From positions 1 to 35,544 of the forward strand of contig NEEC01000129.1 in NCBI GenBank assembly GCA_002189035.1: DNA of 35,544 nt. Reading direction: 5' to 3'. Position 1 is the first letter of the stretch. Every line of letters starts with the position of its first letter. The stretch is from Utricularia gibba. Taxonomy: Eukaryota > Plantae > Magnoliophyta. The notes beneath the pieces are model-generated. The model was not told the origin of the DNA. It worked only from the letters and a program-made list of their open reading frames with translations, and did no database searches. This document shows, one piece after another, positions 17,272-30,921 of this stretch. The translations under genes were made by a program, and so were the position numbers.

Positions 17272-17990
17272 CAAGTTCAGCGCCTAGCATTTTCCAGAGA
17301 GTTTTCTTCTATTCTCTTCTCTTCATTCAAAGGCATGATGCAGAGAGATTTCTTGAAATGTGTCGTTTTCTCAGGCCCCGGATATCTCCACACAACCAGA
17401 TGATCGCAGATTCCGAAGGGCAGAACTCTCGGATTAGGGTTTCACCGCCTATGGCGAATCAACGGACACTACCACGGCGGTAAGAAAAAACACCACCAGG
17501 ACGACCACGAGCACCACCCTCACCACTCCGACTCGTGTACTTTCATTCTAGAATGAACAGCGCAGCGCAGCTCGCCCAGGTTGACGGACGTTAACCGCCA
17601 CCGCCACCCACGTCTACCGTCGACCGTGCCACTGCCGCCCGCTTTGCTTTGTGCCCGCCACCGCCATCAACCACCACCACCAGCGGGCCTGTTGGGGCGC
17701 GGGCACGATCGTCCGTCGCTAGTTTAAGATTTGACTATGAGGCGTGGTTTGAAATTAAGGTATAACATTGATTTATAATGTGTTTAATAAAATTATTTTG
17801 TTTTGTATGAAGATATAATTATACTAATTATATGGGTATAATTATCATTATATCTATATAATAACTTCATATATGACTATATGTATATTCAATGAAAATA
17901 TGGATATTTTTTAAATCTACATATTTAGATTTATTTAAATTCAAATAATTTAAACTCACCAATATATCAACACACTAACGAAACAAAGAC
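17272..17990 (+). repeat. Dispersed repeat, copy 1 (GC-rich core then AT-rich tail); copy 2 at ~21421-22545
   Basis: 17395-17990 is nearly identical to 21950-22545, and 17272-17385 matches 21421-21560. No convincing ORF; probably transposon-derived. Confidence 0.85.
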
Positions 17991-18250
17991 TGATTATTCA
18001 GTCTATTAATTTGAAAATATAATAATATAATCCAAATAATACAAAAGAGTTTCACCATCATCAATGGTAAGTACCAGGTGTGACTGACGTGACCAATTTT
18101 CTTAGCCTATTCTCAGTCTCCGACCAAGAGGGCGCATGCGTTCCCCCGTCCACGAAAGGCGTTTGCTTCGAATGTCAAAATGTAGCTCCAAGTGTAGTAT
18201 ATATTTGTCTCCCTTGATCGGCGAGGAGCCTAAGTCAAGTTCAGGTCAGG

Positions 18251-18502
18251 ATGTTGAAACATATAGCTTTGGCTGTCTTCTTGCTGCTCGTGATCGCGCC
18301 ATGCTTGGCCTCTCCGGTCCACCGGAGGATGCCCGCGCTTGCAGTTTCCAAAAGGGGGATCATAGCCCGGCCTCCGGCGCCGGCGGCCAAAAATGGGTTT
18401 ATCAAGACACATTTAAATGTTGCAGATAACAGCGGGAAGCAGAATGAGATGTTGTTTATCCGAGATCCGCCTCCACCACTACTGGAGGGAGGAATGGTGT
18501 AA
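18251..18502 (+). CDS. Small secreted Pro-rich peptide precursor A (83 aa)
   Basis: Hydrophobic signal peptide MLKHIALAVFLLLVIAPCLAS, then AVSKR-GIIA-RPPAP-AAKN and C-terminal RDPPPPLLEGGMV*. TATA-like TATATAT ~45 bp upstream. Clear paralogy with the genes at 20114 and 23111. Confidence 0.75.
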   Translation: MLKHIALAVFLLLVIAPCLASPVHRRMPALAVSKRGIIARPPAPAAKNGFIKTHLNVADNSGKQNEMLFIRDPPPPLLEGGMV

Positions 18503-18594
18503 AGGTATTCCACGTTTGCGGCATCTACGCATCGTGACGCCGTTGTTTGTGTTGGCTCCGAGGTTTGTTATTTTTACAGTGATGTCGTTAGTGA

Positions 18595-19133
18595 TGTTGA
18601 GTGAGGATGAACATGAGATAAACCAGCAGCAAACTGTGAGAAATGTGGAGGACCCAGAACAGGAAAATAAAAATGTGTCGAGAGATAACGGGAGGAAGAA
18701 GAGAAAGGTCTGTCACCAACTCGGACTAGTTATACTGGACAGCAAGATGGGACACCAACAAAGATACTCCAACTCATCCACTTCAAGAAAATGGCCCAAC
18801 ATGAGGATATGGCCCAACGTGCTGAAGTCAATACTGTTGGAAGTCTTAGTGAGCAACGGGTAATCCCTAGAAGTAGGCGACCGTTGCTAAAGAACTATAA
18901 ATATGTGTATTTTTGTATAACACAATAACTTTGTTTTTTTCTCTAAGGAGAAATACATATATCAAATTAGCCACATCCTTTTCTCATATCTGTTCTACAA
19001 GCCTCACACACTGATATAAATTGCTATCAATTAGACCTATTTTAGGTCAAATATGTTGGGTCCAATCCATTACACTTTACCTATGGACTTTGCTTGCAGT
19101 CTTGAGTGTATGCTTCGTGCTTGTGTGTTACAG
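18595..19133 (+). mobile_element. Degenerate LTR-like fragment (possible solo LTR)
   Basis: Begins TGTTG and ends GTGTTACA, with an internal CTATAAATA at ~18895. Related copies lie at ~21563-21948 and, inverted and more diverged, at ~21171-21400. No target-site duplication found. Confidence 0.35.
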
Positions 19134-19362
19134 TCATCTTAAATAAATGGAGTTTAGTCACAAATTTTCACTTTACTCTTATTAGAAAAAAAAAAAGCAA
19201 ATAATATATCAATAAATATAATCAAATATATAAAAAAAATTATCATTAATAATGAATTGTATTCAATTTTTTTCCAATGAAATCTATATTTTTTATTTAC
19301 TTAAATTTCATGTATGTTCGTCTCATTCATAAGATTTTTAATTTCAACAAACATATCTGCAT

Positions 19363-19374
19363 TGGTATCAAAGC
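19363..19374 (+). other. PBS-like motif TGGTATCAAAGC (tRNA-iMet primer-binding-site variant)
   Basis: One mismatch from the canonical plant LTR-retrotransposon PBS TGGTATCAGAGC, and preceded by ...CA-T. No gag/pol ORF follows. Confidence 0.3.
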
Positions 19375-20113
19375 AGCCTCACTTTGGTCCTTTCGATACT
19401 TTTATCTTTCCCAAATTCATGAGAAGATTTACCAGAATCCCCAGGAACACTTCTACTCAAGAGAAGACCTATGAGAATTCTGCCTGTTTGAAAAGGAGTG
19501 CGTGCAATCTTCTTCTTGAGTTCTGAGTGATCGTTGTATCACTTAGTGTGGGGATTTTGTTATCACCAAGTGCATGTCAGTACTGCTATTGTATCTGTGA
19601 ACACACAGTGAATTGCCTCTTGGTTTGGTTTGGATGAACTCTAGCCAATGATATTTCCCAGTTCTTACGGTTTTATCTGGTAAAAAAAAACAATGTCTCT
19701 AAAATAACATAAATCTAAAAATACTTTTTATTACATAGTTTTAACTTTTCGTTTAATTTCATTTTTTAATTAAAAATCATATTTTAATAATTATACTTTT
19801 ATGAATTTTAAATTATGTTAAAAATTTAATAATAAAATAATAATTATTCTGAATTTTTCAGAATTTTTATTATATTTATAATTCAATATATACATTCAAA
19901 TTTCAAATTATGTATTTTTCTAAAATCTAAACACCCTTACTATTTTTCAAAATTAACGTGTCGGTGATGCGGCCCGGCCCATTCGCAGTCTCTGACCAGG
20001 TGGGCGTCTGCGTTCCTACCTGACATTCCGTTCTCAAAAGGCGTTTGCTGTCCACAACTTGCTCCAAATGTGTTATATATTCATCTCCCTTCCTCAGCAG
20101 TAGCCAACTCAAG

Positions 20114-20411
20114 ATGAAGAAACCAACAACAGCTTTGGCTGTCTTCCTGCTGCTCCTGATTGCACCATGCTTGGCCTCTCCTCTCCGCCAGAGTATGTTC
20201 GGGCTCGCACTTGCAGATTCCAAAAGGGAGATGGAAATCAGGCCTCCGGCGCCGATGACAAGACAGTTTAAAATCTCGGAGGTCCCCAGTCCGCCTCCAC
20301 CACAACCACCACCACCACCGGAGGGGAATTCCTGTATCAACCACCACTACCGGAGGGGAATTGCTGTATCCACCACAACCATCACCAACACCGGAGGGGG
20401 AATTGCTGTAA
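20114..20411 (+). CDS. Small secreted Pro-rich peptide precursor B (99 aa if one G is restored in each of two G-runs; the as-assembled ORF runs to 20476)
   Basis: Signal peptide MKKPTTALAVFLLLLIAPCLAS, ADSKR-EMEI-RPPAP, PSPPPPQ, then three nucleotide repeats. These read PEGEFLY / PEGELLY / PEGELL* when G-runs 20323-26 and 20355-58 are read as five G, as in the third repeat. The TAA at 20409 aligns with the stop of paralog A. Confidence 0.75.
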
Positions 20412-20584
20412 AGTTGTACCATGTTTATGGCATCTGTTGCTTCTTTGACGATTTTAGAGTTACGGTCTCCCTGTAGTTCTTGGTGTTGAGCAATGCATTA
20501 TCAAGTTTTCTGTAAGATAAATTGGGTTATCAGTGAATGAGTCGAACTCGACGGAGGAACATGCCTGCGATTGGCTATCTAAGA

Positions 20585-20872
20585 CGATGTCAATAGTGGC
20601 TCAAGCTCGTTGCTTGAAGAAACAAACGCGCCTGCTTTGTTCTAGAATGAAAAGCCCGCGCAAGGAGACTACACAGTCCACACGTATACATTGAAAAGGT
20701 TAACAAGAAACAAACGCGCCTACGCAATGTAATGGTTTTCGAAGTGACCAAAGACTTGACGCGTTCCAGGTCAAGGGTCCTCAATATCGGATCAGGAGTG
20801 TGGAATCTACTTTCCGCCCAAGGAAAAACAGGGTTGGTGAAAGAGTAGAGTTCGCCTTCCTTGTATATACAA
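20585..20872 (+). promoter_or_regulatory. CGCG-box/W-box-rich promoter of peptide gene D (duplicated at ~23547-23834 for gene E)
   Basis: ACGCGC at 20626 and 20714 (within a 17-bp direct repeat aagaaacaaacgcgcct), CCGCGC at 20656, TTGACGCGT at 20756-64, GGTCAA (W-box TTGACC on the minus strand) at 20769, and TATA-like gtatatac ~75 bp before the ATG. Confidence 0.55.
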
Positions 20873-20939
20873 GTGCCAAGGCTCATCTCTCTTGTTGCAA
20901 AGGGCAACTGAGAGAAAGGAGGAGTCTTTAGCATTGGAA

Positions 20940-21195
20940 ATGAAGAAACTTGATAGCAGAGCCACTGCTGCATTCATGGTGACTCTCTTGCTGCTTATCG
21001 TGATGATTACACACTGTTTTGCCGCCGGCAAAGCAACAGCAGCAGTTCCTCTTCAAGGTAATTCATGCTTGCACTAGCAGTGATCCATCACAGGCACTGA
21101 AAATTGGTCGTTTGTTTTAAGGTTCAGAGATGTCTATCCCATCTCGCAACAACCGGAAGATGTTTCCGTTTCATGGACTTGGGTCTTCTCCTTAA
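20940..21195 (+). pseudogene. Secreted peptide precursor D, truncated paralog of E; exons 20940-21057 and 21128-21195
   Basis: Same signal-peptide exon and 70-nt GT-AG intron as E. Exon 2 matches E only up to RNNRKMFPF, then switches to unrelated repeat-derived sequence (HGLGSSP*), losing the conserved SRR...PIPAP block. Confidence 0.6.
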
Positions 21196-21400
21196 GTGTG
21201 GACTCCTTAGTATTTGATTCATATTCGCGAGAGGGCCATTTCATGGAATTAGGATTCAATATAATAAGGTCCATATCTGTCTCATGTCTTCTCTTCGTCT
21301 TCTTACCACCAGCATCGTTCCTGCGAAATCCCTGAGTTCTCAGCTTCAACATCAGCTTCATTCTCACACAATTCATTCTTCAATTCATCTAGGTCAACCT
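21171..21400 (-). mobile_element. Inverted, diverged LTR-like fragment abutting the truncation point of gene D
   Basis: The reverse complement shares blocks (agaagacatg, tt-at-xx-tgxa, aaatggccc) with 18595-18900 and 21563-21800. Confidence 0.3.
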
Positions 21401-21420
21401 TCAGGAGGGATGCTGCGTGA

Positions 21421-22545
21421 ACGCAAGTTCAGCGCCGATGAAGAAGCCTATGGCTTCCTGGTTAGCATCTTGCAGACAGTTTTCTTCTATTCTCTTCTCT
21501 TCATTCAAGGGCATGATGCAGAGAGATTTCTTGAAATGGGTCGTTTCTTAAGCCCCGGAAATTGATGATGAGTGAGGACGAATATGAGACAACGCAGCAG
21601 CAAGCTATTAGAAATGCGGAAGACTCAAACCTAGAAATCAGGAGTGTGTGGAAAGATAACAGGAGGAAGAAGAAGACATGCCAGCATCTCGCGCTAATTA
21701 TGCTGGACAGCAAAGTAAGGAAATGAACTACAAACGATGATCCAGCAATTCCCAGAAGTAGGCAACCGTTACCCACCATTGAACTATAAATATGTATAAA
21801 TATGTGTATCCAGGCACGTCCTAAACTAACTTTGTATGCAGAAAAATTCCTCATTGAGGAAAACAATTTCCAAAATCGTACAATATCTGCCTCCCATATT
21901 CGTCCTACAAAGCCACATACTCTTATACATTGATCAACGGATTGTACACTACCAGATGATCGAAGATTCCGAGAGGGAGAAATCTCGGATTAGGGTTTCA
22001 CCGCCTATGGCGAATCAACGGACACTACCACGGCGGTAAGAAAAACCACCACCAGGACGACCACGAGCACCACCCTCACCACTCCGACTCGTGTGCTTTC
22101 ATTCTAGAATAGACAGCGCAGCGCAGCTCACCCAGGTTGACGGACGTTAACCGCCACCGCCACCCACGTCTACCGTCGACCGTGCCACTGCCGCCCGCTT
22201 TGCTTTTTGCCCGCCACCGCCATCAACCAGTACCACCAGCGGGCCCGTTGGGGCGCGGGCACGATCGTCCGTCGCTAGTTTAAGATTTGACTATGAGGCG
22301 TGGTTTGAAATTAAGGTATAACATTGATTTATAGTGTATTTAATAAAATTATTTTGTTTTGTATCAAGATATAATTATACTAATTATATGGTTATAATTA
22401 TCATTATATTTATATAATAACTTCATATATGGTTATATGTATATCCAATGAAAATATGGATATTTTTAAATCTATGTATTTGGATTTATCTAAATTCAAA
22501 TAATTTAAACTTACCACTATATCAATACACCAACGAAACAAAGAC
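21421..22545 (+). repeat. Dispersed repeat copy 2, interrupted by a ~385-bp LTR-like insert (21563-21948)
   Basis: The flanks match 17272-17385 and 17395-17990. The insert matches 18595-19010 (atgagtgaggaYgaaYatgaga...gaactataaatatgt). Confidence 0.8.
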
Positions 22546-22984
22546 ATGTGATTGTGACTCAGCCTGTTAACCGGTTTTTCTTGTTTTAGGGTTAATCAAG
22601 TACCAATTTTTAGAATTTTTTTATTAAAAGTAGTACTGCCATTGCTTTTATCAAATTGCAGGGTAATGATTGTTTATTTATAAATTTTAGTATTATCTAT
22701 AGTTCTTGGATAAATATTTCACACTATCAATTCTTAATTTTGCTAATTTTTCAATACTTGTTTTGTTCTTGTAATTGTATGTAAATGACATTTAAAATCA
22801 ATGCATTTTTCTGTTTTTTTATACTCAATGTTTGAGTTAATGAAAACTTAATAATAATATTTAATGATCTTTATATCTATAGATGATAAATAATGATATA
22901 AGATATTATTTTATACTTTATTATATAATAATAATATAAATTTTAATATGATATATATATTGACCGGTTAAACTCAGACGCATT

Positions 22985-24133
22985 CAGTCTCTGACCAGGT
23001 GGGCGTCTGCGTTCGTACCTCACACCGTTCTCAGAAGGCGTTTGCCGTCCACAACTTGCTCCAAATGTGTTATATATTCATCTCCCTTCCTCAGCAGGAG
23101 CCAACTCAAGATGAAGAAACCAACAGCAGCTTTGGCTGTCTTCCTGCTGCTCCTGATTGCACCATGCTTGGCCTCTCCGCTCCGCCAGAGTATGTCCGGG
23201 CTAGCAGATTCTAAAAGGCAGATCGACATCAGGCCTCCGGCGCCGATTAAAAATCAGTTTAGAATCTGGAGTGTCCCCAGTCCGCCTCCACCACGACCAA
23301 CAACACCGGAGGGGAATGGCTGTATACACCACATCGACAACCACCACCACCACCGGAGGGGGAATTGCTGTAAAGTTGTACCATGTTTATGGCATATGTT
23401 GCTTCTTTGACGATTTTAGAGTTACGGTCTCCCTGTAGTTCTTGATGTTGAGCAATGCATTATCAAGTTTTCTGTAAAATAAATTGGGTTATCAATGAAT
23501 GAGTCGAACTCGACGGAGGAACATGCCTGCGTTTGGCTATCTAAGACGATGTCAATAGTGGCTCAAGCTCGTTGCTTGAAGAAACAAACGCATCTGCTTT
23601 GTTCTAGAATGAAAAGCCCGCGCAAGGAGACTACACAGTCCACACGTATACATCGAAAAGATTAAGAAGAAACAAACGCGCCTACGCAATGTAATGGTTT
23701 TCGAAGTGACCAAAGACTTGACGCGTTCCAGGTCAAGGGTCCTCAATATCAGATCAGGAGTGTGGAATCTACTTTCCGCCCAAGGAAAAACAGGGTTGGT
23801 GAAAGAGTAGAGTTCGCCTTCCTTGTATATACAAGTGCCAAGGTTCATCTCCCTTGTAGCCAAGGCCAACTGAGAGAAAGGAGGAGTCTTTAGCATTGGA
23901 TATGAAGAAACTTGATAGCAGAGCCACTGCTGCATTTATGGTGACTCTCTTGCTGCTTATCGTGATGATTACACACTGCTTTGCCGCCGGCAAAGCAACA
24001 GCAGCAGTTCCTCTTCAAGGTAATTCATGCTTGCACTAGCAGTGATCCCATCACAGGCACTGAAAATTGGTCGTTTGTTTTAAGTTTCAGAGATGTCTAT
24101 CCCATCTCGCAACAACCGGAAGATGTTTCCGTT
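22985..24133 (+). repeat. Tandem segmental duplication unit 2 (module C+E)
   Basis: Aligns by eye base-for-base with 19986-21170 apart from scattered substitutions and small indels. Confidence 0.95.
23111..23373 (+). CDS. Small secreted Pro-rich peptide precursor C (87 aa if one G is restored; the as-assembled ORF runs to 23410)
   Basis: Signal peptide MKKPTAALAVFLLLLIAPCLAS, ADSKR-QIDI-RPPAP-IKNQ, PSPPPPR. With five G at 23311-14 it reads PEGEWLYTPHRQPPPPPEGELL*, using the same TAA-AG stop as A and B. Confidence 0.75.
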
Positions 24134-24212
24134 CGCAGTTTCGAGGCGGTCGATCGACTTCCCGATTCCAGCGCCCATGGCCAACGTGCGTGATCCACCG
24201 CCTGCTCCTTGA
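23902..24212 (+). CDS. Spliced small secreted peptide precursor E (79 aa); exons 23902-24019 and 24091-24212
   Basis: MKKLDSRATAAFMVTLLLLIVMITHCFAAGKATAAVPLQ-E-MSIPSRNNRKMFPFAVSRRSIDFPIPAPMANVRDPPPAP*. Donor CAAG|GTAATT, acceptor TTTCAG|AG, 71-nt intron, phase-consistent. It shares AVS[KR]R, P.PAP..N and RDPPP with gene A. Confidence 0.75.
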
Positions 24213-24424
24213 TTTGGGTCTCACTGAACGCTACGAAGTGATTTGAAAGCTTATAAGTTGAATAAAGTATGGAACTTTCATGATATGAACTGAAAGGCAC
24301 ATCCTCTCCATCTAAGATTTATACAGAGCACGCGTGTGTTCATTTTAAAATCTCAACATCAAAGTGCCTCGTTGATACGCAATTCGCTTTATCATCTTCA
24401 CTGATGCCGCAGTCATAATCTGCA

Positions 24425-26402
24425 TCAGTTATGGTGCACTTCGTTGGGCAACGTGGGAAGCTTCCTGAACGCGTGTTTCCTGCACCGCTCGAAAATGCTG
24501 TCGTATATCAGATCGAATTCAACTCCAGCTCTTTCTCTGTTTATTATAAACAGAATATGATCGCCTTCCACAACTTTGTAGTACCTGGAACAGATCAGTG
24601 CAAAATGGTGAACAACAGGGAATGGAAATGGAAACTCAAATGCACCAAATGATTTCAGAGCAACCAACCATATCCCTGGCTGCAGAGGATGGAACTCTGA
24701 ATCATGGGTAACAAACTGGCTTGGATGTTCAACAGGGAAACGAGGATGCGTCATTGAGATTGTGTTCAGGGCTCCATCGTTTTCCCACCAGTCTTCGTCC
24801 CTACGCGCATGGATATGCAAGATTTCAAACGTAAAGCAAGGGCTCAGATGAGACATTGGCACCCCCTGACTCACCTGTAACCTTTGTACGGAGGAGTAGC
24901 ATCCGATGGATGCCGCCATTGGCTCATCTGAAGCACCCGGAGGAATAACATCGGGTGTATCCCGAATACGCCGGAGGGGACGGTGGTACCCATGAATTTT
25001 CTAGTACGTTTGGTGGCGTAGCTGAAGTAGTATGTATCAGGAAATGTACGTATATGGCTGTTTAACCTGATGGAGCCCTGGATTGTGAGATCAGGGAGGA
25101 TCCAATCTCCAGATGCAAATGGTCCTGCTTTGCCCATTAGGCAGGAAATGAGGCCCCGGATTCCGATCCTCTTCCACGATAACTCGAAATGATCAAACCC
25201 GAAATTGTAATAGTATTTCAGCATTGGAATGTCAAACCAGTCATAAAGAAGAACACCTATCCTGCATAGCTGCAGGAGGCAGACCGGCTTCAGTGACTTG
25301 CCATCCTCTGGCCTGTGAAGAAGAAGCATGCTTCCATGAAGCTGAATGGGCGCTGTTTATTTAAAAGCAAGAAACAGAGAACAACAATCAGGCAGAAACA
25401 TACTGCATTCCATCCAAATAAGTCCTTGTTGTGCCATTGAAAGCCCCAGATAATGAGGTTATGCTTATAACCCAGTTTGCTGAAGTGTTTTCATGGCCTT
25501 TGAACATCTGCAAACGAATCAGAATCGACGCTTTGATAAAAAAAAACAGTTTGTATGAACAATTTGTAACATGAATTAAGTGCATCTTACCTTGTCAGCA
25601 AGCATCTGCTGCAAGACTCTTACAACCTGAGCTCCGGCAGAGTGCCCGACAAAATGAATTGGATGGTCCTCATCCCATTCAGGATAATGCCCTGAAATAC
25701 GATGGAAGCTTCATAGAAGTGGGAACAACAAGAAAATAAAACAACTCACAAGAATGAAGACAAAAGCAACCGACCGATTTCATAGATTCTTCCAAACTGA
25801 GAGTGCCCACAAGCTTTACTGTGTTCCTCCCCGTAATCCACTTGGCCTCCCTTAGATAGTAAAACAACTCCCTGGCACTAAAACATGAAGAGAACATATA
25901 CAATCTTCAGATTAAGTTCTAGGCACAGAGCTTATAGGGTTTATTAAGTTAGTTTAAATCACACTAACCGATCATAAATACTGGTTAATGAACCTAAATC
26001 AGGGACAAGAACATTATCATCTTTCTTTTCAGCCCCGGCAAAGTAGGACAATCCTCCCAATCTCTTCGGAGCATACAGGAAAACTTCAGCATTTGACTAT
26101 GAAAACTTTGATCCTAAAAAAACTCAAAATTGCAGAATAAATATGCATACCCCTTTTCCAAAACCAAAGATCCCATGAACCAAAACAATCGGAGGAAGGC
26201 CGTGACCCCGCGTGGAGCCTGTATATTCTTCCCTTTTGTAAAAATCAGTCAAATTTGGGCCAAAGAGCCAATCGCTTAAAGTCATTGACAAATCCCCAGC
26301 CACAGCTGTGCTAAATATGTAGAAGCCATACACAATATGCACCAGAGAACTCACGAACAGTTCAGCCAATTGCAGGGACAACACCCACCATTTCCCCATC
26401 AT
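24425..26402 (-). CDS. Alpha/beta-hydrolase superfamily lipase; exons approx 26402-26151, 26063-25969, 25880-25775, 25691-25591, 25507-25404, 25312-24875, 24802-24669, 24586-24425; -1 frameshift at ~25851
   Basis: LPPIVLVHGIFGFGKGRLGGLSYFAGAEKKD, nucleophile elbow PIHFVGHSAGAQV, SLSGAFNGTTRTYLDG, WWENDGALNTISMTHP, and WYYKVVEGDHILFI. Confidence 0.93.
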
Positions 26403-27555: not shown

Positions 27556-29388
27556 TCAAGGACAACCGGGATTCTTCCCGGGGCCGCCGTAGTAGAAGTA
27601 ATTTCCCCAGACTCTGTTAACGCCGCCGCGTATGTCGTAACAGTTGGGATGATCGGCGAGTACCCGGAGATCGGAGAGTGGGATCAAGCTGTTGTCCCAA
27701 TCCACCACTTGCAGGTTTCTGAAATACGACGACTTTCCGAACCCTTCTCCTGCGAAATGCCCGCTTCCCATTTGCGTCGGCGTGTGAGTCCCCATACTAC
27801 GTGTATTTACAATCTCACCCCCGAACTGGACCATGTTTGCGTGCTCTCTCAGATGTGTGAACAGAATCGATGGCCAATAACCCACCAACACTCCGTTGCC
27901 GAATTCCAGCCACCAGTTTCCGTGTTTTGGGTCCTGAGGAGATTGATTGAATTCCAGTTCAAAGTCGGGGAAAGTTTGGGGTTACGGGGAAGCGGGAAAA
28001 ATGATGTGAAAAGCACCACCAGCTAGAATGATTGTGCTTGAAGCATGGTGAAAGGCCGCGCTTTTCTGCTATTCACGCTTTCTCTTTTTTTTTTTTAACG
28101 AAATTTGAAGTATGGTGATTTACCTTCCATATCAACAAGGTGATGTCGAACTGTCCGCTGTTGTAGGAAGAAGTTGGTGAAATGGCTGCTCCTATTGCTA
28201 TTTTGCTGTTGGTTTGAATGAACCCAGAGCAGAGCAAGTTGTAACAGCCTGTTGCTTGGTAGGCATCGCTCTGCATTGATCTTAATCTTAGTTCCAAGGA
28301 TAATTAGCAGCTATGAAAAGCGCTGGCAGTTAACTTACAGTCCAGTAGGTGAAGAATCTGGGGTGGTTGTCGCCATAGAGCTCAGGGCTAACCTGTTTTT
28401 CAAGAATGAGAATGAAGCTCAGATGTTAGTGGCGAACGTATTCTGTTCTGTCTGTGAAAATAACAATGAAGAGAAACTGGAACTTGCCTGCCAACCTGCT
28501 TCAATGGTGTTAAGATCACCTCCAAAAGAACCACCAATAACCCACATTTGTGACAAGCTGAATTCGTATGGATTAGCAACTCTTGGAGCCCACACATTAA
28601 TACTTGCTTTCGCTCCGTAGTATTCCTGTCCAGATGCATAACCTACAGCGTGCTGCAACAGAAGGAACCAAAACGAGAGTATTTGATATAGAAACTCATG
28701 GTTGATGAAAGAATGAAAGACTTGGTTTTTATTGTTGATGAAGTATGAACCTCATGCATGTTGCTGGAGGATTCTCTCCGAACCGGCCTTATCTTCTTCC
28801 CGAATCGAAGGAGAGAGCTTGCTCTTACAATGTCTGCCTCTGTTGTTCTTCTGATTGGAATGGTTCCTTCTGGACAGAACTCATTGTTGATGCTCCAAAG
28901 CTGGAAGCTTTCTTCAAGAACATGCTTTCTTGATGAATGCCCTTTTGGCCTATCAGGCGGATCCTGCAACTCACCAACAAAACTGAGCTATTGGATTGTA
29001 AAACCAGCAACAGAATGGCAATGGGGTTTCGTTCTTACTAGTGGCTTTTGCCCTCTTAATTTGGGATGATCGAAAGCCGGCTGTTCATGTGACATCACAC
29101 AATCTATGATATCACCATCAGGGCTCTGTTCAACGCAAGCGTCCATCTGATTAGGAGAAAACAACAAAGGGCAAGAAAAAAAAAATAAAAACTTGCCTGA
29201 ATTGTCTTCACTGCAGGCTTATTGATTCTCCGGAGATGGGATCTTATCAACCTGAGCTTCCTCAACTCCTCCGTCGGCCTGAAACTCCGATCGGTGTCGT
29301 TGAAACTCATGGAAGAAGCCGGAGAAAGCGAAGATACAAAAAACAGGAAGAAAAAGATCGGCAAAAACTTGCAAGAAGTATCTCCCAT
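27556..29388 (-). CDS. Neprosin / DUF239 domain protein (putative secreted proline-specific endoprotease, with activation-peptide domain); exons approx 29388-29197, 29125-29039, 28963-28751, 28652-28488, 28392-28339, 28270-28124, 27933-27556; two GC-AG introns
   Basis: Signal peptide, then INKPAVKTIQSPDGDIIDCV...QPAFDHP, CPEGTIPIRR, HEHAV..YYGAKASINVWAP, EFSLSQMWV, NTIEAGWQVSPELYGD..RFFTYWTSDAYQATGCYNLLCSGFIQ, QFGGEIVN, TQMGSGHF, and YFYYGGPG. Confidence 0.95.
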
Positions 29389-30408: not shown

Positions 30409-30921
30409 CTAGTTTTGCAGGACGACTGCCAAGCAGTTTTCCACCTGCCTGTTTAGAATTGTGGTGTACTTTGCAAGCGGGGAGTTGACATGAAACTCGG
30501 CCAGCGCATCGTCGCAGTCGTTGCTCAAGGCTGCGCTGAGATGCGTCACCGCTGTGCCTTTGTCGTTGGACTGCAGGCCTTCGAGGCTCGTCTGCAAGTC
30601 GTCGACGAGACGGTCGAAGCCCTCGACGCACGTCCCCATGACGGCGTCCTGGCTCGTGCTGTCCATGGTTGAGATGGCTGGCTGCAGCATACCAAGCTTG
30701 GCCTGGGCACGGCGTCCCGCCGCAAGGGCAGCTTTCACTGCATTGATGGAGGCGCCTTCCAAGGTGGTGGCGCCATTCACCATTCTGTTGCACAGTCGCT
30801 TGTGGGTCGCGGTGCGGCACATTGGATTGACGTCAGGGAGACCCACAGCGTCACTAGTCGAGAACCCCATGATCAGCAGCAGTACAACAGCAAAGGCACA
30901 GGTGACCATCTGGGAAGCCAT
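30409..30921 (-). CDS. Plant invertase / pectin methylesterase inhibitor (PMEI-domain) protein, 170 aa, intronless
   Basis: Signal peptide, N-terminal Cys pair (MCRTATHKRLC), helical core with TC.E.FD..VDDLQ and LSAALS.DCDDAL, and C-terminal NCLAV. Confidence 0.85.
   Translation of the reverse strand: MASQMVTCAFAVVLLLIMGFSTSDAVGLPDVNPMCRTATHKRLCNRMVNGATTLEGASINAVKAALAAGRRAQAKLGMLQPAISTMDSTSQDAVMGTCVEGFDRLVDDLQTSLEGLQSNDKGTAVTHLSAALSNDCDDALAEFHVNSPLAKYTTILNRQVENCLAVVLQN

Follow-up and report, generated by a model that had tools for sequence, protein, structure and literature searches.

A tandem array of candidate secreted proline-rich peptide precursor genes in Utricularia gibba

HypSys precursors of the Solanaceae and Convolvulaceae consist of a signal peptide, a poorly conserved pro-region, and one or more proline (Pro)-rich segments of 15-20 residues; the mature HypSys peptides bear hydroxyproline and pentose chains, and wounding or jasmonate induces them. 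Other plant peptide families are recognized by short signatures, namely a PIPPSAPSKRHN-type sequence ending in His-Asn (IDA), R..P.GP.P.HN (CLE), DY.. (GLV), ..GxGH (CEP), and SGPS..GH (PIP). Here, we analyzed a stretch of 35,544 nucleotides (nt) from Utricularia gibba (contig NEEC01000129.1, assembly GCA_002189035.1; hereafter “the window”), in which an original prediction, made from the sequence alone, had placed a tandem array of five secreted Pro-rich peptide precursor genes (A, B, D, C, and E, in this order along the DNA). We consider it moderately probable that this array represents a real secreted Pro-rich prepropeptide family, whose products would be processed to extracellular peptides. 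The five short open reading frames (ORFs) were all found where predicted, and the array comprises the following features:

18251-18502 (+): gene A, an intact 83-amino-acid (aa) ORF with predicted signal peptide, core SKR-GIIA-RPPAP at 18347-18382, an A-specific extra segment, RDPPPP-LLEGGMV, and a stop
19986-21170 (+): duplicated block 1, comprising B together with the 5' part of D; paralogue of 22985-24133
20114-20411 (+): gene B, with predicted signal peptide, core SKR-EMEI-RPPAP at 20219-20254, an SPPPP block, three PEGE[F/L]LY-type units, and TAA at 20409-20411 (RNA-supported frame)
20940-21195 (+): gene D, with a copy of E exon 1 (20940-21057), followed by an intron (21058-21121) and by the first part of exon 2; stop at 21193-21195, no core
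21141-21814 (+): spliced transcript 3' of D, with exons 21141-21266 and 21391-21814 (RNA contig joint 21266/21391)
22985-24133 (+): duplicated block 2, comprising C and the 5' part of E
23111-23373 (+): gene C, with predicted signal peptide, core SKR-QIDI-RPPAP at 23210-23245, an SPPPP block, a PEGEWLY and a PEGELL unit, and TAA at 23371-23373 if five G are read at 23308
23902-24019 (+): gene E exon 1, with a second signal-peptide type (MKKLDSRATAAFMVTLLLLIVMITHCFA/AG, the slash marking the predicted cleavage site); RNA contigs from 23814 or 23862 onward, depth 12-73
24020-24084 (+): gene E intron, 65 nt, GT..AG (RNA joint 24019/24085)
24085-24212 (+): gene E exon 2, with pro-region, core SRR-SIDF-PIPAP at 24141-24176, MANV-RDPPPAP, and a stop

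By heuristic measures, each of the five N-termini resembles a signal peptide, as they combine a basic n-region containing Lys with a best 12-residue Kyte-Doolittle hydropathy of 2.9-3.4 and an AxA-like (-3,-1) cleavage-type site, which reads CLA/SP in A, B, and C and CFA/AG in D and E. In a six-frame translation of the whole window, the shared core pattern S[KR]R.{4}[RP][PI]PAP matched at four positions (18347, 20219, 23210, and 24141), which are exactly those of A, B, C, and E; when E exon 2 was shuffled 2,000,000 times, 63 of the shuffled sequences contained this pattern, which had been defined post hoc. The second Pro block claimed beyond the core is present as RDPPPP in A, RDPPPAP in E, and VPSPPPP in B and C. 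Hence, all elements of the proposed design were recovered: a signal peptide, a variable pro-region, a dibasic S[KR]R, and a Pro-rich core.

HypSys are listed among the Pro-hydroxylated class of plant peptides (PMC11756074). The array products share with them the sequence of signal peptide, variable pro-region, and Pro-rich segment (the predicted 20-mer of E following SRR contains seven Pro), and the Solanales and Lamiales are both lamiids. However, no sequence similarity to HypSys was detectable, as neither HMMER profile nor word-based searches yielded a plant match, and HypSys precursors are about twice as long. They are not known to carry a conserved dibasic site with an xPPAP core, or PEGExLY repeats. 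Likewise, the IDA/IDL, PIP/PIPL, CEP, CLE, and GLV/RGF families resemble the array in possessing a signal peptide, a variable pro-domain, and a short conserved Pro motif near the C-terminus, encoded by small one- or two-exon genes that often stand in tandem. Unlike IDA/IDL, however, the array displays PIPAP or RPPAP, no SKRHN end, and no Pfam match; the signatures of CLE, GLV-RGF, CEP, and PIP do not occur in the translations of A, B, C, and E, again with no Pfam match; and, different from all of these families, the array core is followed by a second Pro block, plus repeats in B and C. The placement of the core outside the CEP, IDA, PIP, and CLE consensus is thus borne out by the lack of both Pfam matches and defining motifs. 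A superficial likeness exists to tomato systemin (AVQSKPPSKRDPPKMQTD), whose precursor prosystemin has 200 aa and no signal peptide: AVS[KR]R ... RDPPP, as found in A and in E, is reminiscent of AVQSK..SKRDPPK. We rejected this kinship as coincidence, since it needs a gap of 15-40 residues and found no match in the HMMER search.

Searches for relatives pointed in the same direction. Against Pfam (release 38.1, whose annotation includes models for CLE_plant, IDL5, GLV1-2, and RGF3), A, B, C, and both E exons gave only noise (E 0.18-0.24) and no known-family match even at E values up to 10. A and C, used as queries in a word-based search among 5.8 billion proteins, found no match, and an exhaustive HMMER profile search of 1.84 billion representatives with A, B (residues 1-69), C (residues 1-66), and E exon 2 retrieved no plant protein; its sole match, a 2167-aa animal repeat protein (P0001) of which only “GLALVKRR” aligned, was rejected as spurious. 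A metagenome scan with C produced 600 pattern matches, none of which was confirmed. Furthermore, an exact look-up of A and of the neighboring pectin-methylesterase-inhibitor-like (PMEI) protein returned no record in the protein collection, which indicates that the proteins of this genome are not in the collections searched. Because of this, and because small ORFs are commonly left unannotated, the absence of relatives is weak evidence in either direction. In a language-model feature search (Atlas), C fell nearest to small plant proteins that are unnamed, at 0.87 with 171 features in common; the nearest named clusters, at 0.65-0.68, were GLV, CLE, and IDA-like ones. This result is no more than a lead for C, and the same search was uninformative for A and E exon 2. 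A full-text search for PEGELLY-type strings and one review checked for PPAP, DPPP, and SPPPP gave nothing relevant, and a literature search on Utricularia tandem duplicates turned up nothing on such peptides. The proposal of an undescribed family therefore stands as far as the Pfam, protein, HMMER profile, and metagenome searches can see, the motif and profile search suggested along with it having matched no described family or plant relative in the protein collections. As judged from these comparisons, the tandemly duplicated family would be lineage-restricted, and it cannot be recognized as part of IDA, CLE, CEP, PIP, GLV, or HypSys.

Expression was assessed with contigs of RNA runs from three studies, placed on 18235-24230. 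Intergenic stretches had zero RNA depth, and the signal therefore does not stem from contaminating genomic DNA. E is the best-supported gene and the most highly expressed member (depth 12-80), its joint 24019/24085 occurring in X1, X2, and X4, with X9 using the same acceptor. As corrected by the RNA, the intron of E lies at 24020-24084 and exon 2 begins at 24085; the spliced product has 81 aa, and the exon junction reads ..PLQ/VSEMS... Transcription extends to B, covered over 20062-20526 (X4 record 12), and to C, covered over 23166-23391. A had no RNA support in these contigs, its only match being a 32-nt piece of a foreign contig, and in a separate index search 0.76-0.89 of its words were present in DNA runs and at most 0.08 in RNA runs; A is an unexpressed copy in the examined runs. 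Expression of D exon 1 is indistinguishable from that of E exon 1, the two differing at only three sites. An X9 contig that seemed to splice D exon 1 to E exon 2 was rejected as such, for its mosaic is consistent with an E allele. Thus, transcription was found for B, C, and E and splicing for E, whereas of the five precursor genes originally counted, A is left without a transcript and D is a truncated copy.

The B and C ORFs hold up to the second Pro block, beyond which the window reading is probably wrong. In the window's own frame, the ORF of B continues to 20476 and that of C to 23410, and both genes, at GGAGGGG(G)AAT runs, shift in turn into each of the three frames. Three GGAGGGGAAT runs (20320-20326, 20352-20358, and 23308-23314) contain four G, although five are called for by RNA contigs or by the logic of the frame; with five G in every run, the tail of B continues ...SPPPPQPPPPPEGEFLYQPPLPEGELLYPPQPSPTPEGELL and that of C ...TTPEGEWLYTPHRQPPPPPEGELL, each followed by a stop. 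Several observations indicate that the assembly likely under-calls these G runs: an extra G after 20354 is carried in three RNA runs; X9 record 14 joins the units via five-G runs, including the first run of C, and holds an extra 42-nt unit equal to 14 codons; one 32-nt unit is missing from the B contigs of X1, X2, and X4, which, with the extra G, lead into an open frame ending in PEGELL and a stop (reconstructed from coordinates); and the intact ORF of A (..PPPPLLEGGMV) ends at a TAA homologous to that very stop, with homology going on 3' of it. The unit lengths in the window (32, 41, and 47 nt; period 32 in B by TRF) are each one below a multiple of three, and the repeat units in RNA change by 33 and 42 nt, which preserves the frame. 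In the RNA-backed frame, B and C possess a repeated C-terminal PEGE[F/L/W]LY module of variable unit number, for which the Cys/His-rich tails of the window frame (RRGNCC.., GGGIAVKLYHVYG..) were discarded as real domains. The same homopolymer under-calling may extend to other genes of this genome.

These repeats raise the question of whether the array might instead encode small structural hydroxyproline (Hyp)-rich wall proteins, in the manner of mini extensins or proline-rich proteins (PRPs), whose SPPPP block and Tyr-containing PEGE[F/L/W]LY repeats would bear glycans and form cross-links within the wall or a secreted matrix, with S[KR]R..PPAP acting as a Hyp-glycosylation module. SPPPP is the classical arabinosylation motif of extensins, and B and C display an SPPPP block as well as tandem Pro-rich units with one Tyr each, the number of which varies between accessions, as with extensins and PRPs. 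However, E, which has the top expression, lacks repeats or Tyr past the core, with a product of only 20-50 residues, and neither A nor E contains repeats or SPPPP. Moreover, the array products of 80-110 residues are far below extensin or PRP length, with one to three PEGExLY units and a single SPPPP block (in B and C), and the cross-link motifs YxY and VYK or PPVYK are absent. The element common to all members is the short core and not the repeats, and we therefore regard a structural role as doubtful, and a family of processed peptides as the better account.

The relationship between copies was resolved by self-comparison of the window (blastn). The blocks 19986-21170 and 22985-24133 are 92.6% identical over 1187 nt, and A, likewise their paralogue at the DNA level, stands further apart from B and C (71% over ~280 nt, including the upstream region). 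D is 98-100% identical to E as far as 21170 and diverges thereafter; as its homology to E ends there and the core is absent, D is a truncated copy of E or a pseudogene. Similar segments also pair 17285-17385 with 21463-21562 and 18592-18745 with 21563-21713, and 620 nt at 17390-18009 are duplicated at 21946-22570 with 93% identity, so that segments appear shuffled between units and the locus is rearranging. The 620-nt duplicate consists of a GC-rich part with a 48-aa Pro/His/Arg-rich ORF, then an AT-rich part, showed no transcription in the examined runs, and may be a transposon fragment or a dead promoter or exon. The low-level transcript at 21141-21814 (X1 record 2) is spliced (intron 21267-21390, GT..AG), has no convincing ORF, and shares homologous segments with 17285-17385 and with the sequence lying 3' of A (18592-18745); it may be a non-coding remnant of an ancestral 3' region shared with A. 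Within the extra segment of gene A (about 18392-18460), 32 nt (18405-18436) recur unchanged inside a 1186-nt RNA contig that is abundant and derives from another part of the genome. The sequence to either side of these 32 nt does not match, which suggests a templated or filler insertion into A.

E exon 2 has no match to A, B, or C at the DNA level, but its protein aligns with theirs from just past their signal-peptide cleavage site, via the core, to the second Pro block, with scores exceeding those of composition-preserving shuffles (p ~0.001 for A, 0.004 for C, and 0.04 for B). Because the alignment begins right after the signal-peptide site, the most fitting view of E is that of an old paralogue in which a different first exon and an intron were gained, rather than that of a gene of independent origin. 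This modifies the earlier argument that unrelated signal peptides joined to a common core argue for selection on that core: the signal peptides do differ and constraint on the core is weakly supported, but E has the appearance of a paralogue whose first exon was exchanged.

The pattern of divergence provides further indications. Between B and C, the non-coding flanks are 96.6% and the signal peptides 98.5% identical, but the post-signal region only 85.7%, with 19 mismatches in 132 positions as compared to 22 in 647 in the flanks (Fisher p = 6e-6). In this post-signal region, dN (nonsynonymous divergence) is 0.177 and dS (synonymous divergence) 0.108 (dN/dS ~1.6), with the RPPAP codons and their neighbors being identical. 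In comparison with E, the 13 core codons of A, B, and C show a proportion of synonymous differences (pS) of 0.75-0.83 and of nonsynonymous differences (pN) of 0.15-0.27, as opposed to a dN/dS of 0.9-3 for the non-core codons. Hence, the motif has been kept among paralogues inside a fast-diverging pro-region, although this sample is a small one with a post hoc definition of the core, and constraint on the core is weakly supported. Variants in other accessions repeat this picture: two in E exon 2 (24161 and 24176) and one in exon 1 are synonymous, while two further exon 1 variants alter signal-peptide residues. Of six C variants, four replace residues around the core, one of these four turning the first Arg of RPPAP into Gly, so that this position is not fixed.

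These data also bear on the possibility that we are looking at young orphan genes or transcribed, decaying duplicates lacking a selected function, in which the core was simply inherited from a recent ancestor in a duplication-prone region. Such an origin would suit the failure to find relatives anywhere searched, the silence of A and truncation of D, the frameshifts of B and C in the assembly, a dN/dS of at least 1 outside the core, and the shuffling of segments between units. It fits poorly, however, with core codons that keep their residues between E and A, B, or C despite saturated synonymous sites, with E variants that are synonymous in the mature part, with in-frame changes of 33 and 42 nt in the repeats, and with an E gene that is expressed and correctly spliced. 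Furthermore, the signal peptides of B and C are near-invariant while their pro-region diverges, unlike in neutral decay. We consider this explanation unlikely, and favor a family of processed peptides.

Several points nonetheless weigh against this preferred reading. The protein searches and the metagenome scan, which covered no plant genome DNA, revealed no relative from another species. The dN/dS values are based on 36-42 codons, the core columns having been picked once the alignment had been seen, and gene conversion of the flanks could have produced the contrast in divergence between B and C. In addition, the RNA support consists of k-mer contigs from other accessions; in this assembly, B and C carry frameshifts and, if these are real, would be damaged copies in this accession; and with A silent and D truncated, the family is also decaying.

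Direct action on microbes or prey, by secreted Pro-rich antimicrobial or digestive-fluid peptides acting independently of a plant receptor, would be another conceivable function. A quickly diversifying mature part behind a constant signal peptide is typical of host-defense peptides, the Atlas list for A includes, with low scores, secreted animal and fungal peptide precursors such as apidaecin, and a neprosin-domain gene is located 3.4 kb away. Yet, the predicted mature parts carry no marked positive charge and the Atlas scores for A fall within the range of chance, making this function very improbable in our view. The neprosin-domain ORF lies on the minus strand at 27556-27891, ~3.4 kb from E (PF03080, E 3e-34). 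Neprosins are post-proline endopeptidases, and the domain is common in plants; its position beside an array of Pro-rich peptide genes may be chance.

If the array encodes processed peptides, their maturation can be sketched from what is generally known of plant peptides, including entry into the endoplasmic reticulum (ER), hydroxylation, arabinosylation, and cleavage by subtilases. The products would enter the ER, where the signal peptide would be removed after CLA (A, B, and C) or CFA (E). Prolyl-4-hydroxylases would then hydroxylate Pro in PPAP, SPPPP, and DPPPAP, and contiguous Hyp would be arabinosylated. Subsequently, a subtilase-type protease would cleave at the dibasic S[KR]R and thereby release a Hyp-rich C-terminal peptide into the apoplast, predicted to be 20 residues long for E, which might act as a ligand, either phytocytokine-like or HypSys-like, or as another extracellular effector. 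A signalling role for the array peptides is plausible, but even granted a processed-peptide family, signalling through a receptor would be less likely than not. Fast change around a fixed core, together with gain and loss of copies and units, fits diversifying pressure as in defense or reproduction. More speculatively, the array could belong to a new Hyp-rich signalling class of one Lamiales, maybe small-genome carnivorous, lineage, with a ligand built on the S[KR]R-x4-xPPAP...DPPP core and with B and C as polyprotein-like precursors releasing PEGExLY peptides, where copy and repeat number vary under diversifying selection; we would rate this as rather improbable in its entirety.

Plant genomes contain many orphan small secreted proteins, and the array remains a candidate peptide family of known general design. 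If the peptides are active, they would form a further family among the few Pro/Hyp-rich peptide signals of plants and represent a lamiid counterpart to HypSys outside the Solanales, whose natural variants in copy number, repeat number, and hypervariable flanks could be used in structure-function tests. The array genes are absent from the public protein sets searched, and, with two of them probably mis-framed at G runs in this assembly, automated annotation would miss or mistranslate them.

The surrounding window is plant nuclear DNA that is gene-dense (~1 gene/3 kb), with short introns, and an Rfam scan across its whole length detected no RNA family. The RNA contigs of E extend ~790-840 nt beyond 24230 and reach the 3' end of a gene that converges on E from the minus strand (window 24213-25060); this is probably due to overlapping 3' untranslated regions merged by unstranded assembly. 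The convergent gene, with minus-strand ORFs at 24425-25329, looks lipase-like by eye and had no Pfam match. Besides the neprosin-domain gene, the neighbors include a MATE gene, a DUF936 gene, a PMR5/TBL gene, a protein kinase gene, and a PMEI-like gene. The latter is a single-exon gene on the minus strand (30409-30921), whose best relatives are 44-49% identical and all belong to the Lamiales (Oleaceae, Gesneriaceae, and Phrymaceae).

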